A program made the translations under genes and the position numbers. Under the pieces are notes generated by a model. The model was not told where the DNA came from. It searched no databases and saw nothing but the letters and a program-made list of their open reading frames with translations. This document shows positions 35,001-42,759 of a DNA stretch of 64,000 bases, piece by piece. Within the stretch, counting starts at the first letter, position 1; every line of letters begins with the position of its first letter. This stretch comes from Pelomyxa schiedti (Eukaryota > Protista > Evosea): the NCBI GenBank assembly GCA_020536535.1, contig JAHLWZ010000191.1, forward strand, positions 21,975-85,974, read 5' to 3'.

Positions 35001-37554
35001 TTCCTTTTTTAGTCGGAATATGTGGAAACCCTCCCTCCTACATGGGTTGTTTGCACCCTTGCAATGTCAGCAGAACAAGATAGACTCCTTCTTTGCCGCT
35101 TGCAAGTAAGCCAGTGTGTCTGTAACTCTCTCTACTAAAAGGAACCACAAGAATGGCAAAAAATGTGTTGTGGTCTCGCTTCCTGTTCAAGTGACCCCTC
35201 TTACAACATGCATGCCCGAAGACATTAACAACAGTTCCGTAACAATTGATAATGTGGTCAGTGAAGAAGAAGGGGAAGACATAGAAGCAGTACTTTCTGA
35301 TGGGAACACAACCTCTGACGGCAGTGAAAATAGTGATGAAGTTAGAAGTTCTCGTTGCACTGCCGCGGACCAAAGCTGCTTGGATGAAGCTGGTGATGAC
35401 TCAAGTGATGAAGACAATGATTCATCAAGCGAGTCCTGCAGAACTGATGAAGACAACACCGACGATGGAAGTCAAAGTTCACAGTCAGAAGACTCTGGGA
35501 GAGGGGGCTCCAAAAAGGATTCCAGCGAAGATGAAGAGGACAGCGATGACAGTGGCTCGAACTCTGGTAGGGAGGCCTCCGACTCAGCTCGCCGTTCGAC
35601 AGTGAGGATCAAACTGGCGAAAAATAAAGGTCTCTCACAAGAAATTTCTCCAAGGAGTCCCCTCGCATCAGCTTCAACCAGAGGAAAAACAAGAACATTA
35701 AAGGTGACCTCGAGTACAACGCCACATACTCGAAAGACGAAGAAATCATGTGACGTCTCTTTCACAGCTCCTGCCACTCCTACCACCCATAATAAACGCT
35801 TGTCCGCTGCCGTTGTGGATACTCCCCAAAGGCCAAGGAAAAAAACAAAAATCCAGGCGCTACAGGAAACACTCTCTGCGATAATGTCTAGTAATCATGA
35901 AACGGCATTTGCCAAACATGGGGACACGGAACAGGAGAGGCAACAGTGGTGGAGTAGGCGTGGTGAAGTAGACCAAAGAATGAAGGAATTATTGAAGTCC
36001 ATCGAGAATGATCTACTGGGAGTCTGGAAGGTAATTTTCTTTACACCTCCCTTGTGATAGTAATATAACAGGGATTGGTTATTGCCCCGCCTCTCGATGA
36101 CTGTATAAGATCAACAATGGAAGAGAGTATCACAAAACTTGTACGTCGGTGGGCAAACATTTCTACCAAGTATGCCCTCCTCCGTTACTCCTTATGACCC
36201 TCTCACCTGGTCTTTCTTCAAGTGTGAATTCTGGGCTGGTTGAAGCACTCTTCTACGCGAAACCATATCTTTCAGAAGAGGAAATTAAGGTGATTCACCC
36301 CATTCTGTCTTCAATTTATAATTCTCATTGGATAGACTTGCATTTCGTCACTGCTGCAAAATCAAGCAGACACTTGTGTGTTGCAGGTTTTTCTTCGCTT
36401 CCCTGGCTTTATTTTAAAAGTGGGATAAGGAGGTCAACTACTTGTGTTCTCTCTATGACACTGCTTTGAGTAATGCGGAAGCCCTTCAGAAAGTAAAAGC
36501 AGCTCGTTCAGTGAAATCGAAGCCTATGGCGTATGGGAAAATTAGGTGGGTTATTCAAATAACTTCCCTTAGATCCCCCGCCTCGGAGCTTGCTAGACAA
36601 CCGTTGATTTTAATTTTGGACAAGGAACTGCAAGCTCTTGCCTGGGAAAGTATTCCAGTTCTCAGAGAGCACCCAGGTTCGCTATTTCATGTCTGAAGAC
36701 CGAGGCCATTTATCTCACCACCCCTTCAGTGTCAAGGATGCCATCACTACCGTTTGTCACCTCAATGGCACATCGAGTGTTACACCGTGACCGCACTATA
36801 GCCCATGATATTCTCAGAGATGGGATAACTTCGTCTCGCACCTACTATGTGCTTGACCCTGAAAATAACTTGATGAATACGCGGGCAACATTTGGGCCGT
36901 TCTTTTCCAGGCATCCGCTCAATTCAATTTGCACTGTTGTTCACCACTAATGTCCACAGGCAACGCTGGCACGGGCTTGTTGGGGTTCCTCCAACGCCAA
37001 CAAATTTCAAAGGCGCACTTGAATCCAATGACCTTGTCATATACTGCGGCCACGGTACCGGTGAAAAATATCTTGCGGGTTCCTCCATCCAGCGCCTCTC
37101 ACGTTGCGGCGCAGTGCTGTTGATGGGTTGTTCCTCAGGACACTTGTCATACCAAGGTGAATGTGACCCAACAGGAGTGCCTTTGCATTACATGCTCGCA
37201 GGATGGTGTGTTGCTCCCCAAAAGGCCAAGCACCCGCCGCGACACTACGCACAGCGGAACACACAATCCTAACACTGCACTACGCACTAGGCATAAGATA
37301 AATATCTAACCATTGTGGCACACAGCCCCTCACTTGTTGCCAACCTGTGGGATGTAACCGACGGCGACCTGGACAAGCTTACCAAGTCGCTGCTGGACAC
37401 GTGGCTTACAGACACCGACGGCAAGACGAGCCTGCCCTGCGCCCTTGCCAAGTCCCGCACAAGCTGCCGTCTCAAGTACATCGTGGGCGCCGCCACCGTG
37501 TGCTACGGCGTCCCCGTGTTCCTCGCGGCGGCGCCATCACACGACAACCCGTGA
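28728..37554 (+). CDS. ESP1: Separase (peptidase C50) with long helical N-terminal region
   Basis: LILILDKELQALAWESIP; SRMPSL; YYVLDPENNL; IYCGHGTGEKY (catalytic His); LLMGCSSG (catalytic Cys); VANLWDVTDGDLD; YIVGAATVCYGVP. The N-terminal ~6 kb of multi-exon helical sequence is assigned by continuity. Confidence 0.9.
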
Positions 37555-37739
37555 TCGGTTGACTCGCCGTGCGTCCAAGCGCCGTGCGGCTAAATTAATT
37601 CCCTCCCCCAGATAGACTTTCTCATCATCAATAAACCGGCACTAAAAACGCGGCCGTTTCTCTGCCCGGTAGGAGAAAATGAAAACCCGGAAACCCTTCA
37701 AACGAACAAAGTGTCAAACCACTGCAGAACAAAAAAAAA

Positions 37740-40700
37740 ATGGGAAGCGCTGAGAAGATCTTGCCCACAGTTGGAGGGGGAAATGCGGGATTGTGGTGGG
37801 TGGGTGTTAAAGACTCAGATCTGAGAGTGTTTGATGTAGTAATGAGGACGCCTGTAGGGACCACATACAACTCGTTCTTGGTAGTTTCGTCTGAACACGC
37901 TGTGTTGTTTGAAACAGGTTGGTTCGTTCCGAACTACCCTTGCTAGTGAGATTTTTCATTGGGTTTTTTGTTATTTTTTCACTATGGCTTATTTATGTGG
38001 TAGTCAAGAAGCCTTTTGTCAACGAGTGGCTGAGGAACATTAAACAGGCACTTGGAAGTGCCTCCCTTACGCACCTGGTGGTTAATCATACTGGTATACT
38101 TAAGTTTGGCATTCCCCAGCTTATCATCCTTTTTGTTGTACTTTTTTCCGTGATTATAGAACCTGATCACTCTGGTGGAGTGTCCACAGCCTTGGCTGAA
38201 TTCCCTGAAGTTTCTCTTGTAGCAACAAAGACAGCGTTGTCTTTCCTGGAGAAACAGGGTGTTCAATTTTCTGGGCACAAGACTGTACCTGTTTCTGATC
38301 GTGAAAGTCTTACAATAGGCAGTCTCACTTTGGAGTTCCATGTTCTCCCTTTCATTCATTGGCCAGGTAATTCTTAATTTCTCTGCACTTCAAAAACAGT
38401 TCCCCAAGATACGATGATTACTTATATCCCACAATTGAAAACTGCTATCACATGTGACTTCTTGGGTTCCCACTTTTGCTCCAGTACATTCACCTTGTTT
38501 GTGGAGGCACCTCACTCTGTTGACTATTGGAACGCATTCAAATATTATTTTGACGTGATATTTGCGCCATACAGGCTGTATGCCAAGAAAGCTGTGGATA
38601 GAATCAAGGAGCTTGATCTGGCCTTAGTTTGTTGGTACCTTGACTCCATTTAGTCTCTGTAACATAAACCAGCTCTCACGGACCACTTCTGAAGGATGAA
38701 ATACTCACTGAGGGAATTGCCAAATACTGCCTCTGGGCGACTCCCGTGGAGTTAGAACGTCGTGTGGTAATTGCGTTTGTGTCAGCATATGGATTTACTG
38801 AAAGCCTTGCCACTGAAATTGCTAAGGTACAGCCTAATACACCTCCTAGAAATAACTGTTTCCAGGGTCTTGAAGCTGTCAAAGTTCCTTGTAAAGTTTT
38901 TGACTTGTTAAAAACTGATTTCTCGGTTGTATGGGAAGAATTTTCCCATTCAAAAGGTTACTATATTGAATTTATCAATAAATCCAATATTATGTTAAGG
39001 TCTTTTGCTTGGGACACCTACTATCGAAAGGGATGCTTTGGGGCCTGTCTGGAATTTTGCTACTGCCCTCAAACCCCCAGAGCATGGTGACAGGTAATTC
39101 GTTTCTTTTGAATCTTCTAGAAAAGTACGATTCATTTGATCCTTGAAAGGGTATTGGGATGCTTTGGATCTTATGGTTGGAGCGGTGAAGCGTTGGCAAA
39201 TATTCAACAGCGCCTTAAACAAGTTCGGGGGGCAAATGTGCCCTTGGAACCTTTTGCTGCCAATTTTGCTCTGTCTACAAGTGATTCCAGCTCCGCTGTA
39301 ATTTGGGGGGCTCAGTTTGGTCAAGCTGTTCTTGGGATAACTACCACAGTACAACCCTCCGTATGCCTCGCAAAATCTAAATCTTATTCACTAATGACAG
39401 TAAGAGGCCTGTGGTCTTGATTCCTAAAAGTTCAGATGGAAAAACTCACAGATGGAGATGTAAAATATGTGGAGAAATTTTCATTGGAATAGAACCTCCT
39501 GAAACCTGCCCTGTATGTGGAGCCTCTAAGGAGGAATGGGTCATCGAAGATCTTGCATCAGTAACTTCTGTAGCATCTGCAGCAGTTGTATCTACAGTAC
39601 CTCCTGCAGTTCCTGATGTGGAAGATTTGGAATCTGTTCGTGAAAAAGCAAAGGAAAAGTTGAAAGGCTGGTGTGGTGTATATAAAATGTGTGATGGGGA
39701 TTATTCCAAACTTTGCCAAGGTACCTTCCTTCTTCCTCAACTCCGTGGTAAGGGCATACAGGTCAAAGCTATGGAAGGCGACTTGGATTCGGTGGTATTG
39801 GGTCTGGGCAAAGTTTTCACAACAACTTCCTGGCTCTTCAAGCAGTAAAGCTTAGAATGAGTGTCATTTCACTTCATGCAGAACCAGACTGCTCATACAA
39901 TTTCTTTGGGCGTCGGCTTGCCCTCCCCGTAATGGGTGCCCCAGCTACAGGTGTAACCAGGTAAACTCAAAACCAAAAAAAATTAAACAAAAGTCTCCTG
40001 GACCTGATTTCCAAACTACAGCATGGCAAATGCAATTACAGAGGAGGAGTTGTGCAGGGCTACAGTATTTGGCTGCAAATCGGCGGGAACAATTGCCTGG
40101 AGGGGAGATTCCCACACCTACAATCCTTATAATCCTACGACTGAGATGCCTTGTGCCCTTGCAATAAAAGAAGCATCTGGTTTTGGGGTCAAGATAAGCA
40201 AGCCACGAGAGCTCGAAGCCATAAGGAAAACGTTTGAACTCTATGAAGCGATGGGAGCAGTTGCGGTTGGCGTGGATATTGATGCACCCACAAGTCACCT
40301 GATGACAAAATTTGGCAGGAAAGTTTTGCGCAAGAGTGCTGAAGATCTCATGTGTTTCTTTCTCACAGAACTGTACCTCTTCTCATCCTGTTTTTAAAGG
40401 CAAATAGTATCCATGACCCGACTTCCCGTCATATTCAAGGGAGTGATGAATGTTACTGATGCCCGTCTAGCTGTAGATTGTCATGCTGCTGGGATTGTCG
40501 TCTCAAACCACGGAGGCCGCGTAGTCGATTGCACACCTGGTTTGTGTAAGGTTCTTTCTTCCTGTACTGACTTTCCCCAAGGTACCGCAGAAGTTCTCCC
40601 TAAAATTGTTCAAGCTGTTGGAGGAAGGACTAAGATCTTTGTTGATGGTGGTGTCCGAACAGGCTATGATGTGATGAAGATGCTTGCTCTTGGTGCCGAA

Positions 40701-40955
40701 GCAGTTCTTGTTGGAAGGGACATTGTATGTAATTGGTTAGGTTTTGTTTACTCCTAACGACTCCTCAGCTTCGGGCTGCTATTGGAGGAGGAGCCAAGGG
40801 TGTGGAGCTACAAATGCAACAGTATGTAAAGCAATCTCCTTTTAAATTCGACTGATTTTCGTAGGTATTGCGCGGATCTGAAAAGAGCGATGACCATGTG
40901 TAGTGTAAATCGCCTTAGCGAGATTAATGCTGCCTGTATCAGAAGTGATCCATAA
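37740..40955 (+). CDS. Flavodiiron protein - short rubredoxin - FMN alpha-hydroxy-acid dehydrogenase fusion
   Basis: FDP: GTTYNSFL, NHT|EPDHSG, HWP|D, TCDFLG, SHG, SAYGFTESLA, GTPT, FGSYGWSGEA. Rubredoxin: RWRCKICG..PPETCPVCG. Hydroxy-acid dehydrogenase: FFGRRLALPVMGAP, PVIFKGV, VSNHGGR, DGGVRTG, ALGAEAVLVGR. Stop TAA 40953-40955. Confidence 0.85.
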
Positions 40956-40988: not shown

Positions 40989-42717
40989 TTATACTTTACT
41001 CTTCTTTTGATTTGGTTCGTGTGGTTTGTGCACTTTGAGGTTGCAAACTTTTCGCATTTGCTCTTGTTGTTGGCTTTTAATGTAGACCTTGAGCTCTTTC
41101 TCTGTGACTGTGAAGAGTGTAAGTGTAAGGAAGGGAAAGAATTGAGATACCTGTGACTGTGGAGTTTAAAAATGCAGGAAGAGGAACCGCTTGCCATGTT
41201 GATGTACTGTCAGGTTTAAAAGCCTTTAAAAGGGGAGTTTCCGGGCTCTCTGGAATCAGTGATACGAGAAGGGAATTGTCAAACGGGCTGAAGCTAGCGG
41301 CAGTCGGAACACCACCAATATCAATTGATTGCGCAAGAGCCAACTGGCCATCAGAGGTTACAACGAACACGAAGAGCTGCGGAACTCTAAGGAGGGAGTT
41401 ACAGTAAGTCCGAGATAAACAGATAGAAGGGGTTGGTTTACCCCTCAACAGTGGCTGCTAGCAATCCGCTGCGGTAAGACTGGGGTTTAACAACAGATGG
41501 TTTGGTTCCTGGTGGGGGAAGACCTCGCCCAGAAGCCCCTTGGCATAGGTATTGTATGCATAGGCATTTGCCGGTAAGAGGGTCCCATGAACGGAGAGTG
41601 CCATCCCCTGCACCAGACACAAGAATGGTACTGCCACAAAAAACTACGTCTGAAATGAATCTGAGAAGGTACAGGAACTTATTGGCAAAGCACTACTGAA
41701 AATAGTACATACTCTGTGTGACCCATGCAAAATGACTCTATGATGCATGTCTGAGGGAATCTGCTGACTCGGATCCGCTCGTCTCTATCGCATGTTGCTA
41801 CTAGGGTAGTAGTATCAGTTCTCATGCATGCAAGGGAGGTGACCAAGGAGCAGTGGCCAATAGCAAGTTTGATTGCTGGCTTTTGGTGTTGGTATTCTAC
41901 TTTCTGACTTTGGTGCTGCTGTTGCTGTTGCTGTTTCCTGAGTTTCTTGGCAAGCCGATTTGTAACGGAAATGTCCTTGGAAGGAGGGGGATTCACTGCT
42001 GTCGGGGTGACGGGAGACACTGCAGAAGCTGTAGAAGTAGGACTTGCTGTCTTAACAACCTCAGCAGGTGGAACATTGGCTAGTGCCCGAAGCCTGTCCA
42101 CATCGGCAACATATACTTCACCAAATTTGTCAGAGAAAATAACGTGATGTGACAGAATTTCAATCGCCGTTATTTTTTTCTTGGTCTTTCTGAGATTTGT
42201 GCATGAGAATAAGCAAAAGGGGGATAAATTACATCAAATGAAAATAGGAAACCTACATTGTCCTTTCATATTCCCATTGAGCACCAGTATGAGACCACAA
42301 AAGAATTTGTTTGTCCTCTGTGGCTGTGGCAATCAAGTTTCCACTGAAACCAACAGCAGTAATAAATCCCCTTCTCAAATCACACTGACCACATGGAACC
42401 CTAAAGCAGAAGGACACGACACACAGCGTAAATACTTACACTAGATTTATTCACTATTCGTCGTATTAACAAGACCCAAGGCCACAACAAACAACAAAAA
42501 AAAGAAGGTCACACTTGTTAAACTCTGGAATACTGTAAACTGCAAAATTGGCACCCCAAGCCACTAACACCGATGGTTGTTGGCCACCTCCTGCTGTTGC
42601 ATATTTGATGTGTGAGTACGGCAACTGCATAGTCGCCGACGCAGCAGTAGAAGGCGTTGTGGTGCTACTGCTGGTTGTAGCCGAAGGTGTTGGTGTAGCC
42701 ATGGCAGGAGTGGTCAT
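40989..42717 (-). CDS. WDR4: tRNA (guanine-N7)-methyltransferase non-catalytic WD40 subunit
   Basis: IGHCSLVTSL..TCDRDERIRVSRFPQTCIIESFCMGHTE and LVSGAGDGTLRSWD match the Trm82/WDR4 signature (DRDEKIRVS..IESFCLGH). Confidence 0.85.
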
Positions 42718-42759
42718 TCGTGTATTTGATTGGACGATCAAAAGTTTCTTTTGGTTTTT

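Follow-up and report, generated by a model that had tools for sequence, protein, structure and literature searches.

A spliced four-module gene in Pelomyxa schiedti

The window analysed here is a stretch of 64,000 nucleotides (nt) from Pelomyxa schiedti (assembly GCA_020536535.1, contig JAHLWZ010000191.1, positions 21,975 to 85,974 of the forward strand), and positions are numbered from its first letter. At 37740..40955 of the plus strand it contains a gene that links a flavodiiron protein (FDP) core, a short rubredoxin and a dehydrogenase-like barrel in a single chain. The gene begins with an ATG at 37740, ends with a TAA at 40953-40955 and consists of 15 exons; its 14 GT..AG introns of 38-86 nt join open reading frame (ORF) fragments from all three frames into a stop-free coding sequence (CDS) of 2523 nt, which encodes 840 amino acids. 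A preliminary description of the locus, made from the letters alone, had proposed one spliced frame carrying an FDP core, a flavodoxin domain, a CxxC-x12-CxxC rubredoxin and a triosephosphate isomerase (TIM) barrel, and motifs as well as Pfam matches place all four as given below.

The first module is a metallo-beta-lactamase-like diiron domain (amino acids ~15-245; 37782..38706, plus strand), recognised by motifs, the Pfam family ODP and structure alignments. All seven diiron ligands are present (H88, E90, D92, H93, H156, D175 and H236), with the motifs HTEPDH (amino acids 88-93), HWPD (156-159), CDFLG (174-178) and CSHGP (234-238). The ODP match reached 6.9e-19 on P0001, a public partial version of the protein described below, and the domain aligned with the structures 1ycf (E 1.9e-46) and 7r2p. 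Next comes a flavodoxin-like flavin mononucleotide (FMN) domain (amino acids ~262-405; 38755..39324, plus strand), assigned by Pfam and motifs, which includes Tyr273 and carries the predicted FMN-binding motifs SAYGFTE, LGTPT and FGSYGWSGEA (352-361); Flavodoxin_1 matched residues 267-393 of P0001 above its cutoff (1.5e-09), and NCBIfam flav_short matched too. A linker of ~25 amino acids leads to a short rubrerythrin-type rubredoxin (amino acids 431-462; 39444..39539, plus strand), in which CKIC (436-439) and CPVC (452-455), separated by 12 residues, supply C436, C439, C452 and C455. Pfam RUBY_RBDX scored 45.9 bits on exon 9 against a cutoff of 26.5 (3.7e-12).

A Ser/Ala/Val/Pro-rich linker of 27 amino acids (463-489; 39540..39620, plus strand), evident from the sequence and matched by no Pfam family, then connects the rubredoxin to an FMN_dh-family TIM barrel (amino acids 490-840; 39621..40952, plus strand). 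The barrel was identified by Pfam and by a subfamily alignment. Its key residues are K712, H736, R739, D674/D676 and K649-P650-R651, and its motifs are IFKG (710-713), SNHGGR (734-739) and DGGVR (767-771); FMN_dh (PF01070) matched exons 10, 12 and 13 with 28.8, 57.1 and 64 bits, respectively (cutoff 24.9), and 86 of the 98 invariant positions of a 15-sequence subfamily alignment (A1) are retained in Pelomyxa. Pyr_redox_2 and Rubredoxin_C, the domains of NADH:rubredoxin oxidoreductase (NROR), had no Pfam match on any exon, and FMN_dh takes their place. All motifs listed in the preliminary description were found, but it had missed an invariant three-Cys motif, CGVYKMCDGDYSKLC (C507, C513 and C521; 39672..39716, plus strand), which was recognised in an alignment of 87 subfamily sequences.

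The hinge of the fusion is intron 8 (39361..39404, plus strand; 44 nt). Its 3' end, CACTAATGACAG followed by TAAG and then AGG, forms a tandem acceptor (CAG/TAAG) with two possible splice sites 4 nt apart: use of 39400 places a TAA at 39401, directly after residue 417, while use of 39404 keeps the frame open into the rubredoxin. The RNA evidence consists of assembled contigs of one sample, X1 being a single-cell RNA-seq run. Across 39300-39450, the interval previously singled out for an RNA check, an 869-nt contig (X1, record 3) joins 39360 to 39405, skipping 44 nt with GT..AG borders and with 189 nt on the shorter side; this is the in-frame fusion, and the form ending at TAA 39401 was not seen in the contigs. 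The same contig also holds the joints of introns 4-7, and introns 10-14 are confirmed by other contigs (X1 and X2), giving nine RNA-confirmed introns besides intron 8. A loose contig end at 39760 coincides with the end of exon 9 and implies intron 9. As had been noted from the sequence, the downstream part lacks a start codon: in the stretch from the frame-0 stop (39378) to the rubredoxin there is no in-frame ATG. These data confirm that the in-frame spliced fusion is real and transcribed. A choice between the two acceptors by the distance from branch point to AG was also attempted; introns 12-14 fit 39404, introns 1-3 have no clear branch motif, and the RNA joint was used for the decision instead.

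An exhaustive HMMER search with exon 9 retrieved the public protein P0001 (589 amino acids), named 'FprA family A-type flavoprotein [Pelomyxa schiedti]' at NCBI, with identical residues 418-522. Residues 1-588 of P0001 equal our model and use the same exons 1-10, indicating that the public model already uses acceptor 39404. It then runs into intron 10 (AGG TAA), and because this intron was missed, ~250 barrel residues have been cut off; the truncation makes the fusion architecture invisible to database architecture searches. The P. schiedti genome paper makes no mention of flavodiiron proteins or rubredoxin.

Both flanks of the gene are occupied by spliced eukaryotic genes, so the gene is nuclear. 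Upstream, at 36892-37555 (plus strand), lies a separase/caspase-like C-terminal fragment, which is richer in G+C than the FDP gene (46% in the CDS and 36% in the introns). Downstream, at 41077-42741 (minus strand), lies a WD40-like gene with a polyglutamine stretch and a 43-nt intron (41108-41150), and RNA confirms this intron by a CT..AC joint at 41107-41151 on the minus strand. Contamination or a chimeric assembly was ruled out by these neighbours, by two DNA assemblies in each of which the whole 4 kb is unbroken, and by the metagenomic ortholog described below. Between 37300 and 41300, DNA run X4 differs from the window, with which X3 agrees, by nine single bases and two small indels, and none of the four differences in exons changes an amino acid. 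At 39013 and 39802 the alleles of X4 recur in RNA run X1, which points to at least two haplotypes or strains. Intron 3 (38367-38408) has a second tandem acceptor, a CAG (38399) and an AAG (38408) separated by 9 nt, either of which keeps the frame; splicing at the distal AG gives back the FDP consensus HWPDTM, splicing at the proximal AG would add VPQ, and no RNA contig covers this site.

Conservation of the fusion and relatives of its halves

A 107-amino-acid fragment (P0002, 59% identity) led to a metagenome contig, L001, which is 456 kb long, intron-bearing and eukaryotic. A collinear ortholog covering residues 13-830 was found on it by tblastn, and on the kept alignment columns its identity to Pelomyxa is 54% in the FDP core and 69% in the barrel. 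The junction intron of L001 lies in the same place, has 36 nt with GT..AG borders and a single AG, is in frame once spliced and, if retained, ends in an in-frame TAG. The fusion is thus conserved in a second eukaryote; given the single AG, the tandem acceptor is not.

FDPs have been sorted into nine classes (bioRxiv 10.1101/2024.04.03.587993) according to the modules attached to the core. Class A is the core only; class B adds a canonical rubredoxin, class C a flavin reductase, class D a short rubredoxin, class E a Fer4_19 iron-sulfur (Fe-S) domain, class F a short rubredoxin plus NROR, and classes G and H carry flavin-reductase-like and rubredoxin modules (PMC6033852; PMC9364112; bioRxiv 10.1101/2024.04.03.587993). 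Trees of the two halves, following the per-module phylogeny previously suggested as a check, placed the core in a protist FDP clade and the barrel among Asgard sequences. In a quick tree of FDP cores (LG+G4), the Pelomyxa/L001 pair falls inside a clade of 17 sequences with a Shimodaira-Hasegawa-like approximate likelihood ratio (SH-aLRT) support of 99, together with Anaeramoeba, Mastigamoeba m51a1_g9990 (class F) and g3041 (class A), and EukProt class F proteins. Membership in this mostly class F clade suggests that an NADH-reductase module was probably swapped out. In a careful tree of the barrel, the eukaryotic pair (100/100) lies within a group of 23 sequences (99/96) that holds Asgard archaea, three metagenomic sequences and four from Fibrobacterota/Spirochaetota; its sister is a pair of Heimdallarchaeota, with moderate support (82/95). 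Judged from these trees, the simplest reading would be that a class F or class D protist FDP-rubredoxin had its reductase module replaced by a transferred Asgard-type dehydrogenase. Vertical descent of the barrel from the archaeal ancestor is conceivable too, but would need many losses.

Judged by alignment, the C-terminal module is a member of a distinct FMN_dh subfamily of anaerobes and not a typical lactate/glycolate oxidase. The preliminary description had called it an FMN alpha-hydroxy-acid dehydrogenase, which agrees with Pfam FMN_dh, but its lactate/glycolate-oxidase-family identity needs correction: only the C-terminal half of the barrel (Lys, SNHGGR, DGG, GRD) aligned with lactate and glycolate oxidases and flavocytochrome b2, and the NCBIfam cutoffs for L-lactate oxidase, LldD and glycolate oxidase were not reached by the closest homologues, standing in for the Pelomyxa module (100-134 bits against 376-645). 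The middle of the barrel had no match from Pfam or from PDB sequences. Full-length homologues score 172-198 bits on Pfam FMN_dh. Across 87 subfamily sequences, the columns of the FMN-N1 Lys, the Asp157 equivalent, the catalytic base His and the carboxylate-binding Arg (K712, D676, H736 and R739) are at least 97% conserved, and an N-terminal C-x2-[CY]-x2-C-[DN]-G-x5-C motif precedes the barrel, with its three Cys invariant in 87/87. A fourth Cys, giving CxxCxxCx7C, is present in 47 of the 87. This form is that of a Clostridia/Nitrospirota/Desulfovibrio clade; the Asgard/Methanobacteriaceae/Desulfobacteraceae/Pelomyxa clade has CxxYxxCx7C instead. The split between Cys and Tyr resembles the pattern of 4Fe and 3Fe ferredoxins. 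From its pattern alone, the three-Cys motif looks like a candidate [4Fe-4S] or [3Fe-4S] site. A genome scan returned more than 600 loci of this subfamily, and the best 80 are all from anaerobe-type lineages (Asgard archaea, Methanobacteriaceae, Desulfobacteraceae, Clostridia, Nitrospirota, spirochaetes and similar). ESM Atlas clusters near one Asgard member (P0160) include Spirochaetota proteins of 650-750 amino acids that combine an FMN_dh fold with ATP-grasp/LAL_C2.

Gene neighbourhoods and the proposed electron route

The subfamily has been paired with rubredoxin in prokaryotes as well. An N-terminal rubredoxin in the same ORF was found in 13 of 90 prokaryotic loci, which belong to separate clades; it is of the short type in four bacteria and one Desulfobacteraceae variant and canonical in eight Methanobacteriaceae. 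The ESM Atlas also contains a Methanobacteriota cluster of 51 members, 94% of which have Rubredoxin. Approximately unbiased (AU) tests, whose groups were named after the tree had been inspected, reject a shared origin with the eukaryotic module for each of the two rubredoxin-fused clades (p about 1e-9 and 1e-49). Together with the separate position of the fused clades, these tests indicate that the pairing arose repeatedly, at least three separate times in prokaryotes. Import of rubredoxin and barrel as one unit from a bacterial or methanogen Rd::FMN_dh was ruled out by the tree position and the AU tests. In Desulfobacula, a flavodoxin gene begins within 14 bp 3' of the FMN_dh gene and an FDP gene lies 3.5 kb away. 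This locus (Desulfobacula sp., L033 1822-10383) holds genes for citrate synthase, a rubredoxin-DUF2231 membrane protein, FMN_dh, flavodoxin and a class A FDP within 8 kb. It is possibly an unfused counterpart of the Pelomyxa chain.

Neighbouring genes also bear on the substrate. The FMN_dh gene lies directly 3' of a FumC/AspA-type lyase gene in Thor- and Lokiarchaeota, in one unclassified bacterium and in most Methanobacteriaceae. In the latter, sdhA/frdA, sdhB/frdB, the lyase gene and Rd::FMN_dh (with a canonical rubredoxin) form an apparent operon with overlapping stops and starts (L043 861-6077), and the same arrangement is found in L039, L041, L042 and L044; no membrane anchor gene was seen within the stretch inspected. 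The Asgard loci also hold sdhAB, citrate synthase, aconitase or succinyl-CoA synthetase genes, though synteny common within Asgard does not count as independent evidence. This company of C4-dicarboxylate enzymes points to a malate/oxaloacetate reaction. A lactate- or glycolate-type donor, as originally proposed, finds no support in either the NCBIfam scores or these neighbourhoods, which point instead to an L-2-hydroxy acid as the donor, malate being favoured. The other part of that proposal, an electron route through the rubredoxin, gains comparative support from the 13 fused loci.

Taken together, we consider it probable that the gene encodes a four-module, probably five-cofactor, self-sufficient and water-forming organic-acid:O2 oxidoreductase; cofactor content, direction of electron flow, substrate and the preference for O2 over nitric oxide (NO) as acceptor are what we infer in this assignment. 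The substrate, most likely an L-2-hydroxy dicarboxylate or monocarboxylate with L-malate as the best guess, would be oxidised at the FMN of the C-terminal barrel. Electrons would then leave one at a time, probably via an Fe-S centre on the three-Cys motif, be accepted by the tethered short rubredoxin and pass to the FMN of the flavodoxin domain, and the diiron site of the partner subunit would reduce O2 to water. Transfer from rubredoxin to the core is already established for FDPs of classes B, D and F (PMC6033852, PMC9364112). Regarding the acceptor, Lys61 and Tyr273 of Pelomyxa align with both second-sphere positions in an alignment to the E. coli D52K/S262Y variant (7r2p), and the O2-selective FDP of E. 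histolytica has Lys53/Tyr271 at these positions (PMC13133992). The Lys61/Tyr273 pair and the membership in the protist clade favour O2 as the acceptor.

Several observations weigh against this assignment. On the transcript side, no RNA contig reaches exons 1-3, the whole ORF is not covered by any single molecule, and 39594-39702 inside exon 9 is bridged by no listed contig from the one sample. Moreover, cDNA 5' ends marked by SMART-seq template-switch oligo tails occur at 38514 and 39830 in two runs, although these are probably truncated cDNAs rather than internal transcript starts. On the side of the enzyme, literature searches gave no characterised member of the FMN_dh subfamily. The N-terminal half of the barrel cannot be aligned to known 2-hydroxy-acid enzymes, and in a profile alignment to human HAO1 a Val stands against Tyr132 and the stretch around Arg167 has no aligned counterpart (these two residues are the substrate-binding Tyr129 and Arg164 in spinach glycolate oxidase); with no equivalents of Tyr129/Arg164 identifiable, even the class of substrate is uncertain. 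In Methanobacteriaceae the lyase neighbour scores as an aspartase, and the lyase linkage is missing from the loci closest to the eukaryotes (Heimdall, Hod and Sif). The Lys/Tyr markers alone do not switch the selectivity of the E. coli FDP (PMC13133992), and a reversed dehydrogenase, acting as a 2-oxo-acid reductase, is conceivable.

Four other explanations were considered. The first is that the substrate is not a 2-hydroxy acid and that the barrel is a divergent FMN/Fe-S module for another donor, such as a reduced cofactor, an amine or a substrate linked to a thiol or bound in a peptide. The likeness to known enzymes is confined to the cofactor-binding C-terminal half, all NCBIfam equivalog scores are far under cutoff, the family also holds enzymes such as MftD that do not act on hydroxy acids, and annotations as EC 1.1.3.15 are reported to be frequently mistaken (PMC8491902). 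We nevertheless regard this explanation as unlikely, because the catalytic His-Arg pair (in SNHGGR), the Lys and the Asp are invariant across the subfamily and the recurrent neighbours make or use malate and fumarate.

The second concerns the tandem acceptor of intron 8, which might act as an isoform switch between a class A FDP of 417 amino acids, ending at TAA 39401, and the fusion as a minor or conditional form. The first AG, 4 nt before the second, does yield a stop exactly at the natural end of the FDP core, and minor variants are hidden in contigs; Logan contigs drop rare isoforms, and a minor 39400 isoform could stay concealed in this way. However, 39360 to 39405 is the sole intron-8 junction in the RNA contigs, the single AG of L001 means that such a switch is not conserved, and an mRNA of the stop form would carry 1.5 kb of untranslated ORF, the downstream part having no start codon of its own. 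A switch of this kind therefore seems quite unlikely.

The third keeps the four modules and changes the direction of electron flow: an external reductase would feed the rubredoxin, which would supply both the diiron site (O2) and, as a second sink, the FMN barrel acting on a 2-oxo acid such as oxaloacetate, and the protein would not be self-sufficient. In its favour, the C4 branch is usually reductive in methanogens and other strict anaerobes, operons with frdAB-type genes fit either direction, and a partial tricarboxylic acid (TCA) cycle in the reductive direction has been predicted for the organelle of P. schiedti (PMC8887013). Sister FDPs of the same clade, in contrast, have an electron-input module (NROR) at this place, and the FDP would lose its donor if a second sink took that place. 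A reversed barrel also sits badly with the redox potentials, which are lower for 2-hydroxy/2-oxo acid couples than for rubredoxin, and we hold this arrangement to be very unlikely. Equally improbable is the fourth explanation, a fused enzyme acting mainly as an NO reductase, which could appeal to the NO-selective members of the FDP family and to the nitric oxide reductase names of the best-scoring solved structures (1ycf, E. coli flavorubredoxin) but meets a Lys61/Tyr273 pair as in O2-selective protozoan FDPs and a core that groups with protist FDPs (PMC13133992, PMC9364112).

Returning to the organic-acid:O2 oxidoreductase, a more specific scenario is conceivable, and we offer it tentatively, as doubtful in its full extent. 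The protein would represent a new FDP class, an L-malate:O2 (H2O-forming) oxidoreductase bypassing NAD(P)H, which arose in a pelobiont ancestor when a class F NROR was replaced by a Heimdall-like Asgard dehydrogenase; the whole Cys-motif subfamily would then be an Fe-S/FMN malate:rubredoxin oxidoreductase serving the malate/oxaloacetate step of TCA branches in Asgard archaea, Methanobacteriaceae and many anaerobic bacteria. If the assignment is true, O2 scavenging in an anaerobic eukaryote would be tied directly to an intermediate of fermentation or the TCA cycle, sparing the NADH pool. The rubredoxin fusions and the operons with fumarase and succinate dehydrogenase genes yield a testable prediction for the central metabolism of Asgard archaea and methanogens, and an Asgard-type module in an amoeba gene may be of interest to studies of gene transfer.

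Comparison with known flavodiiron proteins and related systems

The preliminary description knew of no FDP class with a lactate/glycolate-oxidase-family module, and this was upheld: the architecture matches none of those in PMC6033852, PMC9364112 and bioRxiv 10.1101/2024.04.03.587993, and an FMN_dh module occurs in none of the classes whose composition is spelled out there. Literature searches for an FDP with a hydroxy-acid module gave nothing relevant. Among sequences, the HMMER search with exon 9 revealed only P0001 and P0002 as FDP+FMN_dh proteins (best 150 of 428 matches); two word-based searches were also made, in which residues 418-589 of P0001, compared with proteins of 324-1031 amino acids, found no FDP-containing match beyond these two, and the core (residues 1-417) returned only class A or class F-like proteins among the best 120 of 7967. 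These negatives are weak, as they cover the best matches only and intron-split eukaryotic genes show up as fragments. The four-module architecture has thus not been described so far. All characterised or catalogued multidomain FDPs receive electrons either from NAD(P)H, by way of modules resembling NROR or flavin reductase, or else from unknown partners; wiring to an organic acid would be a different solution.

The closest resemblance is to class F FDPs such as TvFDPF1-3 of Trichomonas vaginalis and CD1623 of Clostridioides difficile (PMC9364112, PMC6033852), which likewise consist of a core, a short rubredoxin and an input module in ~840-900 amino acids. In contrast to these, whose FAD- and NADH-binding NROR draws on NADH, the third module of Pelomyxa is an FMN_dh barrel with a Cys motif, predicted to take electrons from an organic acid; Pyr_redox_2 and Rubredoxin_C do match in true class F relatives. 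The first 462 residues of Pelomyxa are arranged as in a class D protein, core plus short rubredoxin (PMC6033852), but class D proteins end at the rubredoxin and need a separate reductase, whereas ~350 more residues follow in frame in Pelomyxa.

Outside the FDPs, flavocytochrome b2 (yeast L-lactate:cytochrome c oxidoreductase, 1fcb) offers a parallel, in that an FMN_dh barrel is joined by a flexible hinge to a small one-electron carrier, and the two barrels have the catalytic Lys, His and Arg in common. Its carrier, however, is haem b5, a Cys motif and a terminal oxidase within the chain are both lacking, and the N-terminal halves of the barrels cannot be aligned. The Rd::FMN_dh proteins of Methanobacteriaceae (L043 4770-6077) and bacteria (P0062, P0109, L034, L035) belong to the same subfamily and share the three-Cys motif and the rubredoxin fusion; they differ in lacking an FDP core and, in methanogens, in having a canonical rubredoxin, and their barrels are not the closest relatives of that of Pelomyxa. 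Closest to the C-terminal module are the Asgard proteins annotated as 'alpha-hydroxy-acid oxidizing protein' (~351 amino acids; P0160, L024, L025), with 52-58% identity over ~340 amino acids and, as in Pelomyxa, a CGVYxxCDG motif with Tyr at the second position. Unlike the Pelomyxa module, they stand alone, without rubredoxin or FDP, and in Thor- and Lokiarchaeota their gene directly follows a fumarase-like gene.

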